This document shows, one piece after another, positions 14,395 through 26,996 of a DNA stretch of 64,000 nucleotides. Made by a program: the position numbers and the translations under genes. The notes beneath the pieces are model-generated. The model did not search any database. It had not been told where the DNA came from and was given only the letters and a program-made list of their open reading frames with translations. Position 1 is the first letter of the stretch, and every line of letters begins with the position of its first letter. The DNA comes from Choristocarpus tenellus KU-1152. Lineage: Eukaryota; Protista; Phaeophyceae. Location of the stretch: the NCBI GenBank assembly GCA_964200185.2, contig CAXNAD020000002.1:1-64000 (forward strand), written 5' to 3'.

Positions 14395-17300
14395 TCAATA
14401 GATCAACCGGTGCAAAATTGATGCAAAATTGTGACGCTGGTAACTGTTGAAGAGTACATTGTGAGCACTCTGCCGGATAATAGTGCACAACATATGGAGA
14501 CTCTGTGCCCCCTGTGGGACAGAGAGTATCAATTGGACCGCACGATGTTCACTTTCTCCTTCTTTAAGAAGATTGTCTGCAAGGAATTCAATGACAGTAC
14601 ACCAGCTTAGTCGCCTGTCTTTCGGCACACAGACCTGAAAATGGGAAGCACAGAACAACGATTGTGTCACATGATAGTAATGGCATGGATTTAGAAACCA
14701 ATTATCAAAAGACAAATTTTGCCAACTCTGAATCATTCGTTCATATAATTTTCAAGCGTTTTCTGTGAGATGTGAATCATATTGCACCCTTCACAAGTAA
14801 CTCATGCAGTTGCATCAAGAATCTAAAGCAATCTCTCCACAGCCATAAATAGATTCCTGATACTTACCCCTTCCATGAAAACTCTTTCCACTGCAGGTGG
14901 GGCATATGGGAAATGCTGTTGACAAGTGGCTTCTCCTGACATAACCTCATCAAGGTGTGCATTATCCTCTCCATTTGCCAAGATGCTCCCAATGTATTGT
15001 GCTGCATCCAATCCAAAGCACATTTCAAAGGCTGGACTTACACAGCTGAGCAAACCTTCCCGAAGGACTGACTTCTGGAATGCATGCACAAGGGCATTGA
15101 ACTGATGTACCACCTGGATAAGGTATGCATTTGATGTTTACTCATGATAAACAATCACATCGGTCAAAATCTTGTTTGAACAATACTTTCCATGACTACC
15201 TGTCAGTGGTTTCTCAGTTTTTCCTGCTCCCCACCGCATTAGTACAAAATATTTGTATCCCTTCCAATTCATTGTCATAATGCTCAGGAACCTCCCAATA
15301 CATGTTATACTCAGTCTCAAGCAAGATGTCTCTATTCACAACTAAAGCATCTCCCTGAAGATGTGATGTGGTGGAGTGTCAATGTGTGGACAATGCGTGA
15401 AGATGGGGTGGGTAAGAATACAAATACATGGATCTCACCTTAAATCTCTTTTGAAGTGTATGGTGTTTATATTGTATGTAGAATAGTTCACATGTTGAGT
15501 ATGTGTCAGGGGAATTTGAAGGGGTTTGGGGTGAATGCCCATACATTTAAAGTATAGCTCTGACTGATCAGGACCACCTTCTTTGCTTGGTATGTCCTTC
15601 CAATATTATTCCCATGGAATGATTGATACACCCACACCCACCCCTGACAATACAAATGGAGAACATGTAACATAGGTCCTGAACTTCTCAGAAGTGGATG
15701 CAACTCTTACCTGCTGGGGATCCAGTTTTGAGGTGCTACGTTGAACCATGTGACCCATACGCCCTTCACCAGAACTAACATGTGTGTTCTGTGTACCTAT
15801 CTTGCCTCTTGACATTTGCACAAGTCTGAAAGATATGAAAGAGGTGGTTGGCATTGTGCATGGCACATCAAGGCGGTGAATGGTAGGTAAGGAAGGTAGT
15901 TCAACAAGCAACTAAGCACCCAGTACCTTGTTCATTCCTTCTAATTGCAGGGAGTAGGTTGAAAGAGGACATAGTGTGGATTCTTTTTTCCCATTTGCAA
16001 GAACATTATCAACTAATAGTGTAATATTAATAAGCCAGAGATTGAAATGACAATGGAACAATGCATGCTATATACTGCGAACATGAAATCTTTGCCATAT
16101 CATTTTCTGATAGCCAAAGGGTATTTTTATATTTTGAAATATTTTAAACAGCAGGATTCATCTGCGCATGTAGAGAATTCAGGCGTAATCCAATGCTATG
16201 CTTACATTCAACAAGTAGAGGAAATAAATAATGCCCAAGCGTCTTGGTTCTGATTAGAGAAGATTGAATTGAGGTTAGCTGGTGTCTCCATCGAAGCAGC
16301 ACTAAAGTACTAGCTAGTACAACATCAAAGGAACCGAGTGCTCAAAAATATATCATAATATAACCATTGAGCATATTGTAGGTGCCCTGTGAAACCTGTA
16401 GAGAATCAAAGGGAACTAGACTTTGCTGTAATGGGAATGGAGATATCTCCCAACAGTGAGGAAAAAGTGTGTATTATTTTATGTCAAAGAATATACAATT
16501 CAATGCAGTGGGGTGTTGAAATACTACTGGCTCATACTGCCAGTTTTCTTGGACACACAGAAAGGAGGTGAACATTGCTGGCCTTGCAGATTCACTATCT
16601 CTGGTCTAATGCTCTTTGGCAAGTGAAATAGCTCTCCAGTGATGAAATGCCAGTGCTGGCTTGATACATACCAGCTCTTGGAGAGTATCTAACAAGCATT
16701 TTCCCCCTTAGAAGTACCAGAATGCTCAAGATAAGCAATGGGACATGACGAGTCACAAAGTCAAGGAGGGCTGATTTTACCTCAGGTTCAATGTTCCTCC
16801 ACTTGGCAATGCTAAGTTTCAAGGACATTTCAGAGGTTGAAGGGAAGGTAACAGCTCTACTTTATCTTGCATGCAGGTGGCCTGCTAACAAAAACGTCCT
16901 GCAACATAGTACAATAAAAATCTCAGAGGAATGTCATTTGGTACATCACACTCAAGAGATGCTGATAACATAAGCTGACAGGTGAATTCTTAAATTCTAT
17001 TGGTTCAGGGTGGTCATACTGGCTTCATACTTGGTAACTGTCAAGGTTGGAGGGTGCTCACTCTCCTTGTAGTTGAGGATTTAAAGGATGATTTTTATAG
17101 TAATACAGCATTATGAAATGATTAGATACCTAAACATTTGATACAGTAATAACATTATGCATGTAACACAGTGTCCATAGACAAGGTCACAAGGAACATG
17201 CACAGCCAAAGCAACTTTGAGGGGTCTGTGGTTGCGCTATTAGTAACCTCACTGGTAATTCATGGTACAAATGAAAAAATATATTAAAATCTTGTTCAGG

Positions 17301-20300
17301 GTCATGAAAAACTTCAAAACTTTTTATTTGCAAGTAAATTCTTTAATCATGCCAAATTATTTATTGATTATATATAATTAATTATTCTATCTTTTTTAGA
17401 TGCAATTTGTACTAAGCAGAGTTCGGCATAATACGTTTTTCTTCAATAAAATTCTGAATCTAAGTAAATAAATCAAGATGGACCGGTGGGGTAGCCTACC
17501 GTAACCATGCCTTTTGTTCAAGCAATTTTTTTATATGTTAATTTGTATTGAAATATTATAAAGCTACCAAAAAATAAATCTGAAATATATTGGCAGGGTT
17601 TAAATCAGAATTTACTGTAGTACAGTACCTGTGGCAGAGATTCATCAACTGTCGAGGTTCGACGACTTCACCAGCACTGATTTTCTTAGTTGGTGTGAAG
17701 GATGGAATGACCTTCTGGAGAATATTATGAACTGGTTCCATGCTGCCAGAATCTAGGTAAACTGCCCCTGGTAAATACAATTCAATGGCATATAAGTTCA
17801 ACCTGTAGTGCGACAGCAAGCGGGGCAAGTCTTTCAGTATGAACAAAGAGTAATGAACACCATAGCACACTTTCCCTAAATGCTTACCTAGGACAGCCTC
17901 AAAGCAGTCTCCAAGAATTTTTGTTCCCTCCAAAAGTTGTCCTTGACCATGGCGGATGAATGGTCGCTACCAGATAGTAGCGAAGAATAGTGAATGTTGA
18001 GGAAGTGTATGGGAAAATCAATTCAAGTTGACTCAATGGCTAATAATGTTGGACAGCTAGTATGGTTTTGGTGTGAGAATAGCTACATACATGAGACTTC
18101 CAACCTCAGTTGTCAATGTCCCTTTACATAATTTTCTAGGGCATACTGAAGGTATGTCGGTTACTCACTTCACTTCTGTAGTTTGAGGAAAGGATGTGTG
18201 TATGACATCTTAACAAGATGCACCCTGGAGATTGTTACTGATAACCCAAATAGTATCTTAATAGGTTTTGCTGAACTTAGTTCTTCAAATGGAGTGTTTG
18301 ACATACTCTGATTCTGATATCTAGACTCATGGATTACATATAGAATATCACTACTACTGTTAATAATGTAAAGTGGTATTTCTCACTGATGTATGGCGTT
18401 TCTTTTATGGTGTATGTTTTATGACATGTGCTCACTGTTTGAGACAATAAATCCTCATCTGGTGAGGGGCAAATGGGGGTTTTAACACCAATTAGAAGCT
18501 GTTTATACAATTGGCTAGAATAATTTGGTGTCCAGTTTCATGTTCACATCAAATTGAACAATTATCATTAGTGCGACCTGAGTTGATGGCAAAACAAGGT
18601 CTACTCTATGAGATGTGGGACTTGGTCCAGACACAACAAGGTTAGTTCGTTCCCACTGGTTCTAAGTCTGTGGTAGGCAAAGTGCATCTTGTACTGTGAT
18701 GTATGGTGCATAGTCAAGGCTAAGATGCAGAATCATATTGGCTTTGCATTCATTCTGGGATATGGTGAGTTTCCTTGTCACCCGGTCATAATAATCCATT
18801 TCCACTCATTTTCCATAGTTGAAATATATCTTTGACAGCATTTTGGAAACTTGAAGAGGCAAAAGAGTTCCACAATGTAGAATGTGGGGCAAAGTCCAGA
18901 GCAAGCATGATCCACTGTACTGCTCATAGCTGTGATCCCAACAGGATGGATAATATCTGCAGCACAAGAAAGCTTAACAATTTGTAGGTGGAAAATATTC
19001 CATGTAAGGGTCCCAATGACTTGCATGAGTTAATTGTTATGCCAGGGAAATGTTTTACCCAGTCCAGATCGCATACTTGTACGATATGCCTGGAATTCTT
19101 GCATTCATACCTAATCAGTAAAACATTTGTCTCCCAGATATTTCCACATCTCATTGAGATCCAGGGTTTCTTCGTATGCATCCTATCAAGCACCTTGTCA
19201 TCAACTCCATCTTGAAATTCCCTGTCTCCCAACACCATATCCACCGGGGGAAAACTACATACTGAGAGGGGATTTTGGGCACTGTAGTAAGAAATCAGTA
19301 AAATGCTGCCCCAGATTTTTATGGACAAGGGTGTTCCTTATCCCCTTGAAACACAGCTATATAGTAGTACCCACCACTTTAGTAGTGAGCACCATCACAA
19401 AGAGGGCTACTATATATCTCACCAACCACTGCATACCCTCACATCAAACCTTGGTCCCATTGTTCATTTTATATTGATCCCTAGATTACAAACCCCTGTG
19501 AGCTAGGTAGTGTTCCATTATTTCATCCACTGGGTTGATTTGACGAATACAATTATGTTTGAAAAAAAAATGACAGATGGTTGTTTTAGGAGAGAGTCAA
19601 TATATTTGACCCTTTATAGTACATGAACTGTACAATCAGAGATGTGTAAAAAAAATATGCAATTTCCATGTCACGTCATAACAGCAAACTCTTTAGGAGG
19701 AAAGGAATGCTGACATGTACTGGATAAGGATTGATCGGTGGTGCATGGGCCGCACGCGTTGAGCACCAAGCGACCTGGCAAGGTATTACATTCCGATTAA
19801 CAAAATCTGGTAAAACCGACACAATCAGACTCTTAGGAGACAAAAGTCAGGGGTATGCTCAAATGTCTTCACCCACTGGGAGTAATTTAGGTAAAGTATT
19901 TTAGGTAACGCGAAGGAGATCAGAAACAGAAGGGCACCTCCTCGGGTGGGGGCTCCAGCAAGGAACTATTAAAATGTGAAGAAGGAAACATTTAATAATT
20001 TCTCAAGGTTGTAAACGTGGACGCTGGTCAACATAAGGACTCAAAAGTTGCTGGACCTTGGAGCATCTATAGCCCTACAATGGGTGTCCATGAAGTGGAG
20101 TAGTGGTCGGTGGAGTGCATGAGATTAGTGGCGGTGACTGGAAAAGCTGTGCAAGAGGAAAGGGGGGGAAGTCCTTCCTACAAGATCGTAACTACGTGTT
20201 TAAAGAAAACTATAAAGGATACGAAGCGACTCACCAGGTTCAACCTGTCCGCAAACGCAGCACATGCACTCGCGCTGACAAAGCGTTGACGCACAATAGA

Positions 20301-20737
20301 AAGGTGTCCAGAAGATCGCTCTCGCGCGGAACTTGAATGAAAAAGCCACGAGGATACCGCCAGCTGTAGCACAGAGTCGCCAAGCCATTCAAGCTCGTCC
20401 ATATGGCCTGTCCAAATCCGATAGCCAGGAAAAGGATTGCCAAGTGCCATTGACGGCTTCTCCTATTTTGCTACATTTAAAGTTCTGCATGGAATGTTAA
20501 TTCAGTAGTCACAACTTTCTCTTGGACAAGGTATCGACCAACGAAGGCAAATCATCTAAAATTTGGTGAAAGCAAGGTTCCCCCGTATATGTTTGTCCCT
20601 TTCGTCACCTTACCTCCAGCAAAGAGCTCCTCATTGCAAAATGATGAGTGTGTGAGAGCATTGAGGATAAAGTCCCTTTTCCTGAATCGATATCCTAGTG
20701 CATTCTCCACGGATGATATTCTTCCCGAATCCTCCAT
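14395..20737 (-). CDS. Ribonuclease III-domain protein (~371 aa): single catalytic domain plus unrecognised C-terminal region
   Basis: Exons 20737-20614, 20407-20235, 17966-17888, 17767-17629, 15825-15711, 15113-14868 and 14634-14395, all GT-AG and phase-consistent. Spliced product: VENALGYRFRKRDFILNALTHSSF...HMDELEWLGDSVLQLAVSSWLF...GHLSIVRQRFVS...KILGDCFEAVLGAVYLDSG. The last three exons are supported by splice phase only. Confidence 0.88.
17253..17472 (-). pseudogene. rnd: Bacterial ribonuclease D fragment (AT-rich, probably endosymbiont-derived) inside intron 4 of the RNase III gene
   Basis: Manual translation: FIYLDSEFY*RKTYYAELCLVQIASKKDRIINYI*SINNLA*LKNLLANK(fs)VL(fs)VFHDPEQDFNIFFHLYHELP. 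This matches the RNase D ExoI motif (DTEF.R..TYY..L.L.Q) and ExoII motif (KVFH...QD). It has 3 stops and 2 frameshifts. GC is ~23% by hand count over 17281-17460. Confidence 0.8.
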
Positions 20738-26445: not shown

Positions 26446-26799
26446 CTTGAGTCTATCTCATATCTTTCACCTGGTAAGGGATTAAAATCTGCTCATTTTG
26501 ATGAAGCTAGAAAGTGTGATGAGCAAAAATGGGCCACCAATTTTAAATTAATGAGTAAGCTTGGAACTGCTGAAATTTCAAGCTCTTATATACAAAATGA
26601 TCGTTCTAGGAAATTAATATATAATGGTTCGAAGATTTCAGGCGGTGAATTATCTAATTTACTAAATGTTATTTGGCTTACTCCTCAGATGGAAAGTTTA
26701 TTTTTAGGAGGTGCGTCAACTAGAAGAAAATTTCTTGATAGAATAGTTTATGGTTTTGATTCAAAACATGCAAAAAATATAGCAAAATATGATCATTAT
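26446..26799 (+). pseudogene. recF: Internal fragment of a Rickettsiaceae-like RecF gene (118 uninterrupted codons, lacks Walker A and the C-terminal half)
   Basis: LESISYLSPGKGLKSA...MSKLGTAEI...YNGSKISGGELSNLLNVIWLTPQMESLFLGGASTRRKFLDRIVYGFDSKHAKNIAKYDHY. RecF motifs LEAIS.L.PG.GL, WLTP.M and RR.FLDR are present. SKLG.AE and YN.SKI...ELS recall Rickettsia RecF from memory. Intronless, ~31% GC by hand count, AT-ending codons. Confidence 0.92.
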
Positions 26800-26958
26800 A
26801 AATTGTCGACTCCTTTGAGTTTTTTAACTCCCTGTGGGAATTGACTAGTCTTTAACCGCTCAATCAAAAGAGATATTTTTAGTAAAAACTTCTTATTGAG
26901 TTTTTGCAGATCTTTTTTTAACATTTTTAGCTAATTCGATTTTATAGGTTCTAGACAA
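26797..26958 (-). pseudogene. relE: N-terminal half of a RelE/StbE-family type II toxin (one +1 frameshift in an A7 run, truncated at the recF junction)
   Basis: TTG start at 26958 gives (M)SRTYKIELAKNVKK(fs)DLQKLNKKFLLKISLLIERLKTSQFPQGVKKLKGVDNL, matching the RelE pattern Y.I......K.L.KL......I...I..L...P.P.G.KKLKG...Y. It ends just before the expected YRIRVGDYR. Confidence 0.8.
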
Positions 26959-26960
26959 GG

Positions 26961-26996
26961 TTAAATACCTAATTCTGATTTAACCTGATCCCAGGA
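26961..26996 (-). pseudogene. C-terminal tail of the cognate antitoxin gene
   Basis: Reads SWDQVKSELGI*, similar to the W/LEEVKKELGL* ending of many antitoxins encoded upstream of RelE toxins. Its TAA stop lies 2 nt before the toxin TTG, an operon-type spacing. Confidence 0.55.

Follow-up and report, generated by a model that had tools for sequence, protein, structure and literature searches.

Rickettsiales DNA occurs in host chromosomes in the form of nuclear Wolbachia transfers ('nuwts'), which are mostly non-functional, decay by stop codons and frameshifts, vary in age within one genome and in some cases lie in introns. An example of such transfers in insects and nematodes was reportedly given by Dunning Hotopp et al. 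in 2007. Nuclear mitochondrial and plastid DNA segments (NUMTs and NUPTs) are small, truncated, non-functional organelle fragments, inserted at breaks, often intronic and neutrally decaying. In algae, the nuclear genome of Volvox carteri carries rickettsial DNA, and two rickettsial lineages were inferred to have invaded one host lineage (2015, PMC4324946). Algae and ciliates harbour 'Candidatus Megaira' and related Rickettsiaceae as symbionts (Davison et al. 2023, PMC10132079). For brown algae, no paper on integrated Rickettsiaceae DNA was found in the literature searched, nor, except for one Megaira genome from a brown-alga sequencing project, any host-Rickettsiaceae association. Here we describe a short AT-rich patch in the brown alga Choristocarpus tenellus KU-1152, lying in the first 64,000 nucleotides of contig CAXNAD020000002.1 (assembly GCA_964200185.2); this whole stretch is called the window, and all coordinates are positions in it. 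The patch, on the minus strand in an intron of a host gene taken to encode an RNase III-domain protein, is very probably an integrated piece of a Rickettsiaceae rnd gene (RNase D, a DEDD 3'-5' exonuclease), which has drifted neutrally and persists as a functionless fossil.

The rnd fragment and its host intron

Comparison of the window by tblastx with a complete 1.48-Mb Rickettsiaceae genome (G001) gave two matching regions only, the patch (E 4.9e-12) and a recF fragment 9 kb away on the same contig (E 2e-61), hereafter the recF island. The intact recF island served as bait among 185,579 species genomes, its top relatives being uncultured Rickettsiaceae with 80-85% protein identity, and each of the genomes found in this way carries an rnd gene of ~282 codons (open frame ~292 aa) that can be aligned with the patch at the DNA level. 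By blastn, seven Rickettsiaceae rnd genes match the patch with 67-70% identity along 209-223 bases, the E values from small databases being 1e-16 to 2e-13 in a first set and reaching down to 5e-20; overall DNA identity to Rickettsiaceae rnd genes is 63-70%. The NCBIfam rnd model (TIGR01388), run against all six frames of the 164-Mb assembly, matches at C2:17320-17478 on the minus strand (E 2.7e-4, model positions 18-70); a PF01612 profile search of the assembly did not pick up the patch. Judged from these sequence comparisons, the similarity to bacterial rnd is far beyond chance. A first-pass annotation of this DNA had claimed a match to the ExoI and ExoII motifs of bacterial RNase D, which the TIGR01388 model, blastn, tblastx and alignment all bear out, and the translated search against bacterial sequence that it proposed as a check does find rnd.

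Every Rickettsiaceae genome examined (L035-L039, L030-L034) holds two RNase D-like DEDD genes, with open frames of 292-301 aa and 207-224 aa, and both types score under the TIGR01388 cut-off. The ~208-residue DEDD paralogue of these genomes was considered as a source of the patch and gave no match to it.

Alignment with the rnd genes of G001-G005, G082 and G114 and of the metagenome contigs L142-L147 places the edges of the patch at 17252/3 and 17472-5, and its content at codons ~22-96 of the ~282-codon bacterial gene, about a quarter of it. Homology begins abruptly at ~17472-17475, three codons ahead of the ExoI D-x-E, and ends as abruptly at 17253 after ...HELP; of the bacterial gene, the start codon and the ~21 codons at the beginning are missing, and so are the distal three quarters. 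The minus-strand peptides FIYLDSEFY (17446-17472), RKTYYAELCLVQIASKKDRIINYI (17371-17442) and LKNLLANKKF (17317-17346) are encoded in one frame with stops between them, and EVFHDPEQDFNIFFHLYHELP (17253-17315) in another. ExoI is present in its proper context (LDSEF in the patch, (M/I)DTEF in Rickettsiaceae), as is ExoII with its acidic residue (EQDF; VFHDPEQDFNIF in the patch, VFHAPDQDFDIF in the bacteria). ExoIII (Y-x3-D) and the C-terminal part are gone, the bacterial continuation KNIFDTQIAAG... being absent beyond ...ELP (17253). Three in-frame stops, a 2-bp deletion and the loss of ~21 initial codons leave no open reading frame (ORF) from a start codon. The TIGR01388 score is 26.8 bits against a family cut-off of 298.95, a cut-off under which the intact Rickettsiaceae genes (180-239 bits) also fall. 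The patch is a relic of an RNase D family member and not a member itself.

The minus-strand patch of ~23% GC that the first-pass annotation had translated is thus recovered, its pieces lying at 17253-17472. The GC content of the aligned block is 23.1%, and that of 50-base bins over 17250-17450 is 14-32%, against ~36-50% in most neighbouring bins. Of the three stops and two frameshifts originally counted, the stops stand, but a single 2-bp deletion near 17319 explains the change of frame, leaving one frameshift event; likewise, what was called an RNase D pseudogene is of RNase D origin but only a fragment of the gene. A 471-base segment around the patch is single copy in the 164-Mb assembly, and the flanks (17476-17640 and 17080-17251) have no credible match in the complete G001 genome, with which alone they were compared.

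Three public runs (X1, X2, X3), from three samples of one study, contain host DNA of the 15000-20000 stretch. Run X2 contains minus-strand joints with GT..AG ends (15111->15709, 15825->17629 and 17766->17887) and has a depth of 230-290 in exons and about 30 in introns; it has the look of a library of spliced RNA that includes some unspliced precursor. The joints place the patch, as the first-pass annotation had it, in an intron of a host gene, in the same orientation as that gene. A Ribonuclease_3 domain (PF00636, E 1e-10) lies in an upstream open frame (20178-20450), which is taken to belong to the same host gene as the exons near the patch. Exons 17887-17967 and 17629-17766, when joined, read ...LGDCFEAVLG/AVYLDSG... 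(the slash marks the joint), which by eye we take to be an RNase III-type motif, with AVYLDSGSMEPVHNIL as its second half. That the patch landed in a gene for another ribonuclease is best taken as a coincidence, with nothing linking the two. The features are collected in Table 1.

A further spliced intron, at 17767-17886, is 120 bases long, a multiple of three and stop-free, so that a plain ORF scan reads through it (ORF 17556-17933).

Table 1. Positions of the rnd fragment, its lesions, the surrounding host gene and the recF island in the window.
Feature	Position	Strand	Basis
Dead Rickettsiaceae rnd (RNase D, DEDD 3'-5' exonuclease) fragment	17252..17475	-	HMM, blastn, tblastx, multiple alignment
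In-frame TGA; Arg (AGA/CGA) in bacterial genes	17443..17445	-	Alignments
In-frame TAA; Leu in bacterial genes	17368..17370	-	Alignments
In-frame TGA; Gly/Ala/Glu in bacterial genes	17347..17349	-	Alignments
2-bp deletion relative to all bacterial homologues, near 17319; one frameshift	17316..17320	-	Alignment gap column; frame change between two tblastx segments
Host intron holding the patch, 1803 bases, GT..AG	15826..17628	-	Run X2 joint 15825->17629, ends CT..AC
Host exon upstream of the patch intron, encoding ...AVYLDSGSMEPVHNIL...	17629..17766	-	X2 joints 17766->17887 and 15825->17629; ORF text
Host exon downstream of the patch intron	15709..15825	-	X2 joints 15111->15709 and 15825->17629
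Upstream open frame with RNase III signature (DELEWLGDSVLQL)	20178..20450	-	PF00636 Ribonuclease_3, E 1e-10, 42.7 bits, cut-off 27
recF fragment, intact frame	26446..26800	+	79-82% DNA and 80-85% protein identity to Rickettsiaceae metagenome-assembled genomes G001-G003

Integration and donor lineage

Physical continuity of the patch with host DNA is seen in contigs beyond the assembly, all from samples of the one study. In run X1, which may be the source of the assembly, a 41-kb contig runs across the entire 15000-20000 stretch, patch included. In run X2, the 1860-base record 6 matches 15799-17658 without a difference and takes in the whole intron, the patch and 27-30 bases of each exon. This contig from a second sample, identical across the intron and both exon edges, makes it very unlikely that the patch stems from chimeric assembly or from live contamination. 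No joints skipping the patch were reported in any of the three runs. An intact rnd is absent from the 164-Mb assembly, where the best match elsewhere scores 32 bits against 180-239 bits for real Rickettsiaceae genes, as is an intact recF, so the patch did not stray in from a bacterium assembled along with the host. The earlier argument that decay speaks against contamination can thus be strengthened, contamination being excluded by the decay together with the contigs of other samples and the lack of an intact rnd or recF.

In run X3 (depth 3-4, with many other gaps), the listed contigs end at 17222 and resume at 17486, near the edges of the patch; we provisionally attribute this gap to the dropout of AT-rich or poorly covered sequence, and not to polymorphism in the presence of the patch.

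The patch nests inside the Rickettsiaceae. In a tree of a 225-column block with 33 Rickettsiaceae genes, it falls within a clade of nine sequences (99/99) that includes all five genomes found via recF. In a tree with added metagenome contigs, which supplied nearer relatives of one sub-clade, it groups with G004, G005, L142 and L143 at 95/95 (94/91 in another tree), the aligned block being only 221 bases and the resolution modest; with L142/L033 of this group it shares PEQDF, IFFHL and QIAS. Forcing the patch into the G001-G003 group is not rejected by the approximately unbiased (AU) test (p = 0.08-0.09). The recF island sits among G001-G003 with 100/100 support, and is 79-82% identical to them, where they are 78-84% identical among themselves. 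By contrast, the patch is 64-66% identical to G001-G003, which in rnd are mutually 72-78% identical. These placements suggest that the two islands may derive from two donor lineages.

No near-identical donor was found among 121 family genomes, 401 order genomes searched by DNA, or metagenome contigs, the best match being 69-70%. Among the 401 order genomes, with 2 candidates scored per genome, a full-length match was given by G001 only, the others being short AT-rich chance matches. The bacterial origin claimed in the first-pass annotation, with Rickettsiales or other AT-rich alphaproteobacteria as the source hoped for, is thus upheld and narrowed to Rickettsiaceae, the patch falling (99/99) in the group that gives the best recF matches. 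Its idea of a common donor is weakened: both islands belong to the same Rickettsiaceae group, but the best trees put them in different sub-clades, with the AU test not rejecting a shared placement.

The AT-rich segment that directly follows the recF fragment (26800-26996) does not belong to recF and lacks any match to the complete genome of G001; recF and this segment may be two scraps that together form a mosaic insert.

Two readings would remove the patch from the history of host-bacterium transfer altogether. One is an assembly or library artefact, in which a bacterial read was chimerically joined to host sequence or a living bacterium contaminated the sample. The shortness and AT-richness of the patch and the origin of all data in one study would suit it, but it is very improbable in view of the separately built contigs from three samples with 0 differences (the listed X3 contigs being interrupted at 17222-17486), the X2 spliced-library contig that runs from exon through patch to next exon, the broken sequence truncated at both ends, and the lack of any other rnd part or intact bacterial recF in the assembly. 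Scarcely credible is the other, a host-derived origin, as the decayed remnant of part of a eukaryotic DEDD exonuclease (Rrp6/EXD-type) or as a chance resemblance in AT-rich intron DNA. The host does have DEDD-domain genes of its own (PF01612 matches on C2106, C20480, C8312 and others), but they would not account for 67-70% DNA identity to Rickettsiaceae genes over >200 bases, for the placement inside the Rickettsiaceae tree with 99/99 support, or for the absence of a DNA match to the patch elsewhere in the host assembly.

One further locus of the host assembly, C18745:1490-3033 on the minus strand, has three collinear PF01612 matches (model positions 35-151), two of them with an internal stop, and represents either a host exonuclease gene interrupted by introns or a further broken gene.

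Decay and relative age

The first-pass annotation held that the patch is an older, independent transfer, noting that the recF island is free of stops and frameshifts; none was indeed found in the latter, against three stops and one frameshift in the patch. At sites invariant in eight bacterial homologues, the patch has changed at 10 of 82, nine of these changes being at codon positions 1-2. The recF island has changed at 5 of 148 bacterially invariant sites, compared with 3-4 in its nearest relatives (patch versus recF island, Fisher p = 0.013). Intact bacterial lineages show 0-5 such changes in rnd in seven of eight cases, the eighth being G009 (L056) with 14, whose own rnd contains stops. 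The clear surplus in the patch fits a loss of constraint. The end branch of the patch is 0.62, with sisters at 0.39-0.52, and that of the recF island 0.13, with sisters at 0.08-0.15. Since losing constraint, the patch is estimated to have accumulated roughly 0.1-0.2 substitutions per site and the recF island close to none. Stop counts alone give overlapping ranges: with 4-5% of substitutions making stops, three stops in the patch correspond to K ~0.06-0.8 and zero in recF to K < ~0.13. The patch is therefore probably an older insertion, separate from the recF island. The earlier claim is likely but not proven, having in its favour the decay surplus, the longer end branch and the different sub-clade, and against it the AU result.

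Reading the two islands as insertions from two Rickettsiaceae lineages at two times, recF recently from a G001-G003-like source and rnd earlier from a G004/G005/L142-like one, is tentative, its chances falling somewhat short of even. A single event is unlikely but far from negligible: one burst of shredded symbiont DNA from one donor would have landed at several sites, with rnd looking older for being short and fast-evolving. Such a burst would fit two islands lying 9 kb apart as the only Rickettsiaceae-like regions in 64 kb, the tolerance of the AU test for the patch in recF's G001-G003 clade, and the EFY, K-DRII and LLANK that the patch has in common with that clade. It sits badly with the best trees, in which the patch goes with G004/G005/L142/L143 and recF with G001-G003, and with the residues shared with L142/L033; recF, moreover, is as near to G001-G003 as these are to one another, the patch is not, and the lesions and invariant-site changes differ between the islands. 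The age difference would also vanish if rnd had already been a pseudogene in the bacterium, the stops and deletion having arisen before transfer, so that the patch would not have been in the host for longer than recF. In-frame stops do occur in three of the 95 family genomes with rnd (three in G009, one each in G123 and G033), but this is only ~3% of sampled genomes, a coincidence would be needed, and a separate insertion from recF would still be required if the donor lineages differ; we consider it improbable. The three genes concerned (L056 at G009:C1:43485-44432, with three stops; G123:C21:70471-71313 and G033:C7:6160-7026, with one each) are possibly pseudogenes in living bacteria.

Several observations weigh against the preferred reading of an integrated rnd piece that decayed neutrally in the host, or against parts of it. 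Where the patch differs from the bacteria, it does so often at codon position 3 and seldom at position 2 (9-15 of 73), so most of the divergence arose in a functional bacterial gene, and the decay after insertion is small and imprecisely known. The ~35% divergence from known genes is accordingly, on the alignments, mostly the donor's phylogenetic distance and not decay; its distance from the L033 group is about the same as that of intact genes belonging to other sub-clades. Conserved sites show no bias from GC to AT (7 vs 9; 15 vs 14), so the low GC is probably the donor's own and no sign of age. The identification of X2 as RNA comes from its GT..AG joints and an 8-10-fold ratio of exon to intron depth, the run being unlabelled. 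The three runs are of limited independence, since a single study produced them all and the assembly was probably made from one of them. Finally, the polarity and age of the insertion are judged from one host genome.

Meaning and comparison with known systems

The preferred reading would begin with the entry into host nuclear DNA of a ~222-base chromosome piece, the 5' third of rnd but lacking its start, from an obligately intracellular Rickettsiaceae bacterium, possibly of a different lineage than the donor of the recF island. Integrated presumably by end-joining at a break, it would have landed in an intron of the host RNase III-domain gene, in the gene's own orientation. No protein would ever have been made from it, its start codon, promoter and three quarters of the gene being missing, and neutral drift after insertion would have brought the three stop codons and the 2-bp deletion. 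It would be transcribed passively in the pre-mRNA and removed with the intron by splicing, and no function is indicated for it. How the piece was integrated, that it has no function and how old it is relative to the recF island are the parts of this account that we infer.

The patch is a record that the host lineage carried, or was in close contact with, Rickettsiaceae, and it shows that their DNA entered and became established in the nuclear genome, even inside an intron of an expressed gene. Together with the recF island, it suggests that DNA entered repeatedly and that its bacterial sources may have belonged to more than one lineage. If two lineages did contribute at two times, several Rickettsiaceae would have colonised the host lineage, in repeated episodes or continuously, over a long evolutionary span, and the genome of this early-branching brown alga would be a dated archive of Rickettsiaceae infections; no report of a brown-alga genome as an archive of several Rickettsiaceae lineages was found in the literature searched. 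For annotation, such AT-rich patches are best masked as pseudogenic bacterial relics, being neither suitable for gene calls nor to be removed as contamination.

The kind of event is already known, and special to the patch are only its greater decay and possibly its different donor lineage. As in Volvox, Rickettsiaceae DNA lies in the nuclear genome of an alga, the sequenced Volvox strain being without an endosymbiont, but the Volvox insert is ~9 kb with four syntenic genes (PMC4324946), compared with a 222-base scrap of one gene in an intron. The host there is a green alga, and here a brown one. The Megaira study gives a precedent for brown algae living in association with this bacterial group, but deals with bacterial genomes and not with host-integrated DNA, the words 'nuclear' and 'horizontal' being absent from its text (PMC10132079). 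In being small, truncated, non-functional, intronic and neutrally decaying, the patch resembles NUMTs and NUPTs, its source being a bacterium and not an organelle. From nuwts it is set apart by a donor within the Rickettsiaceae instead of Wolbachia, by a host outside the animals and by the very small size of the pieces.

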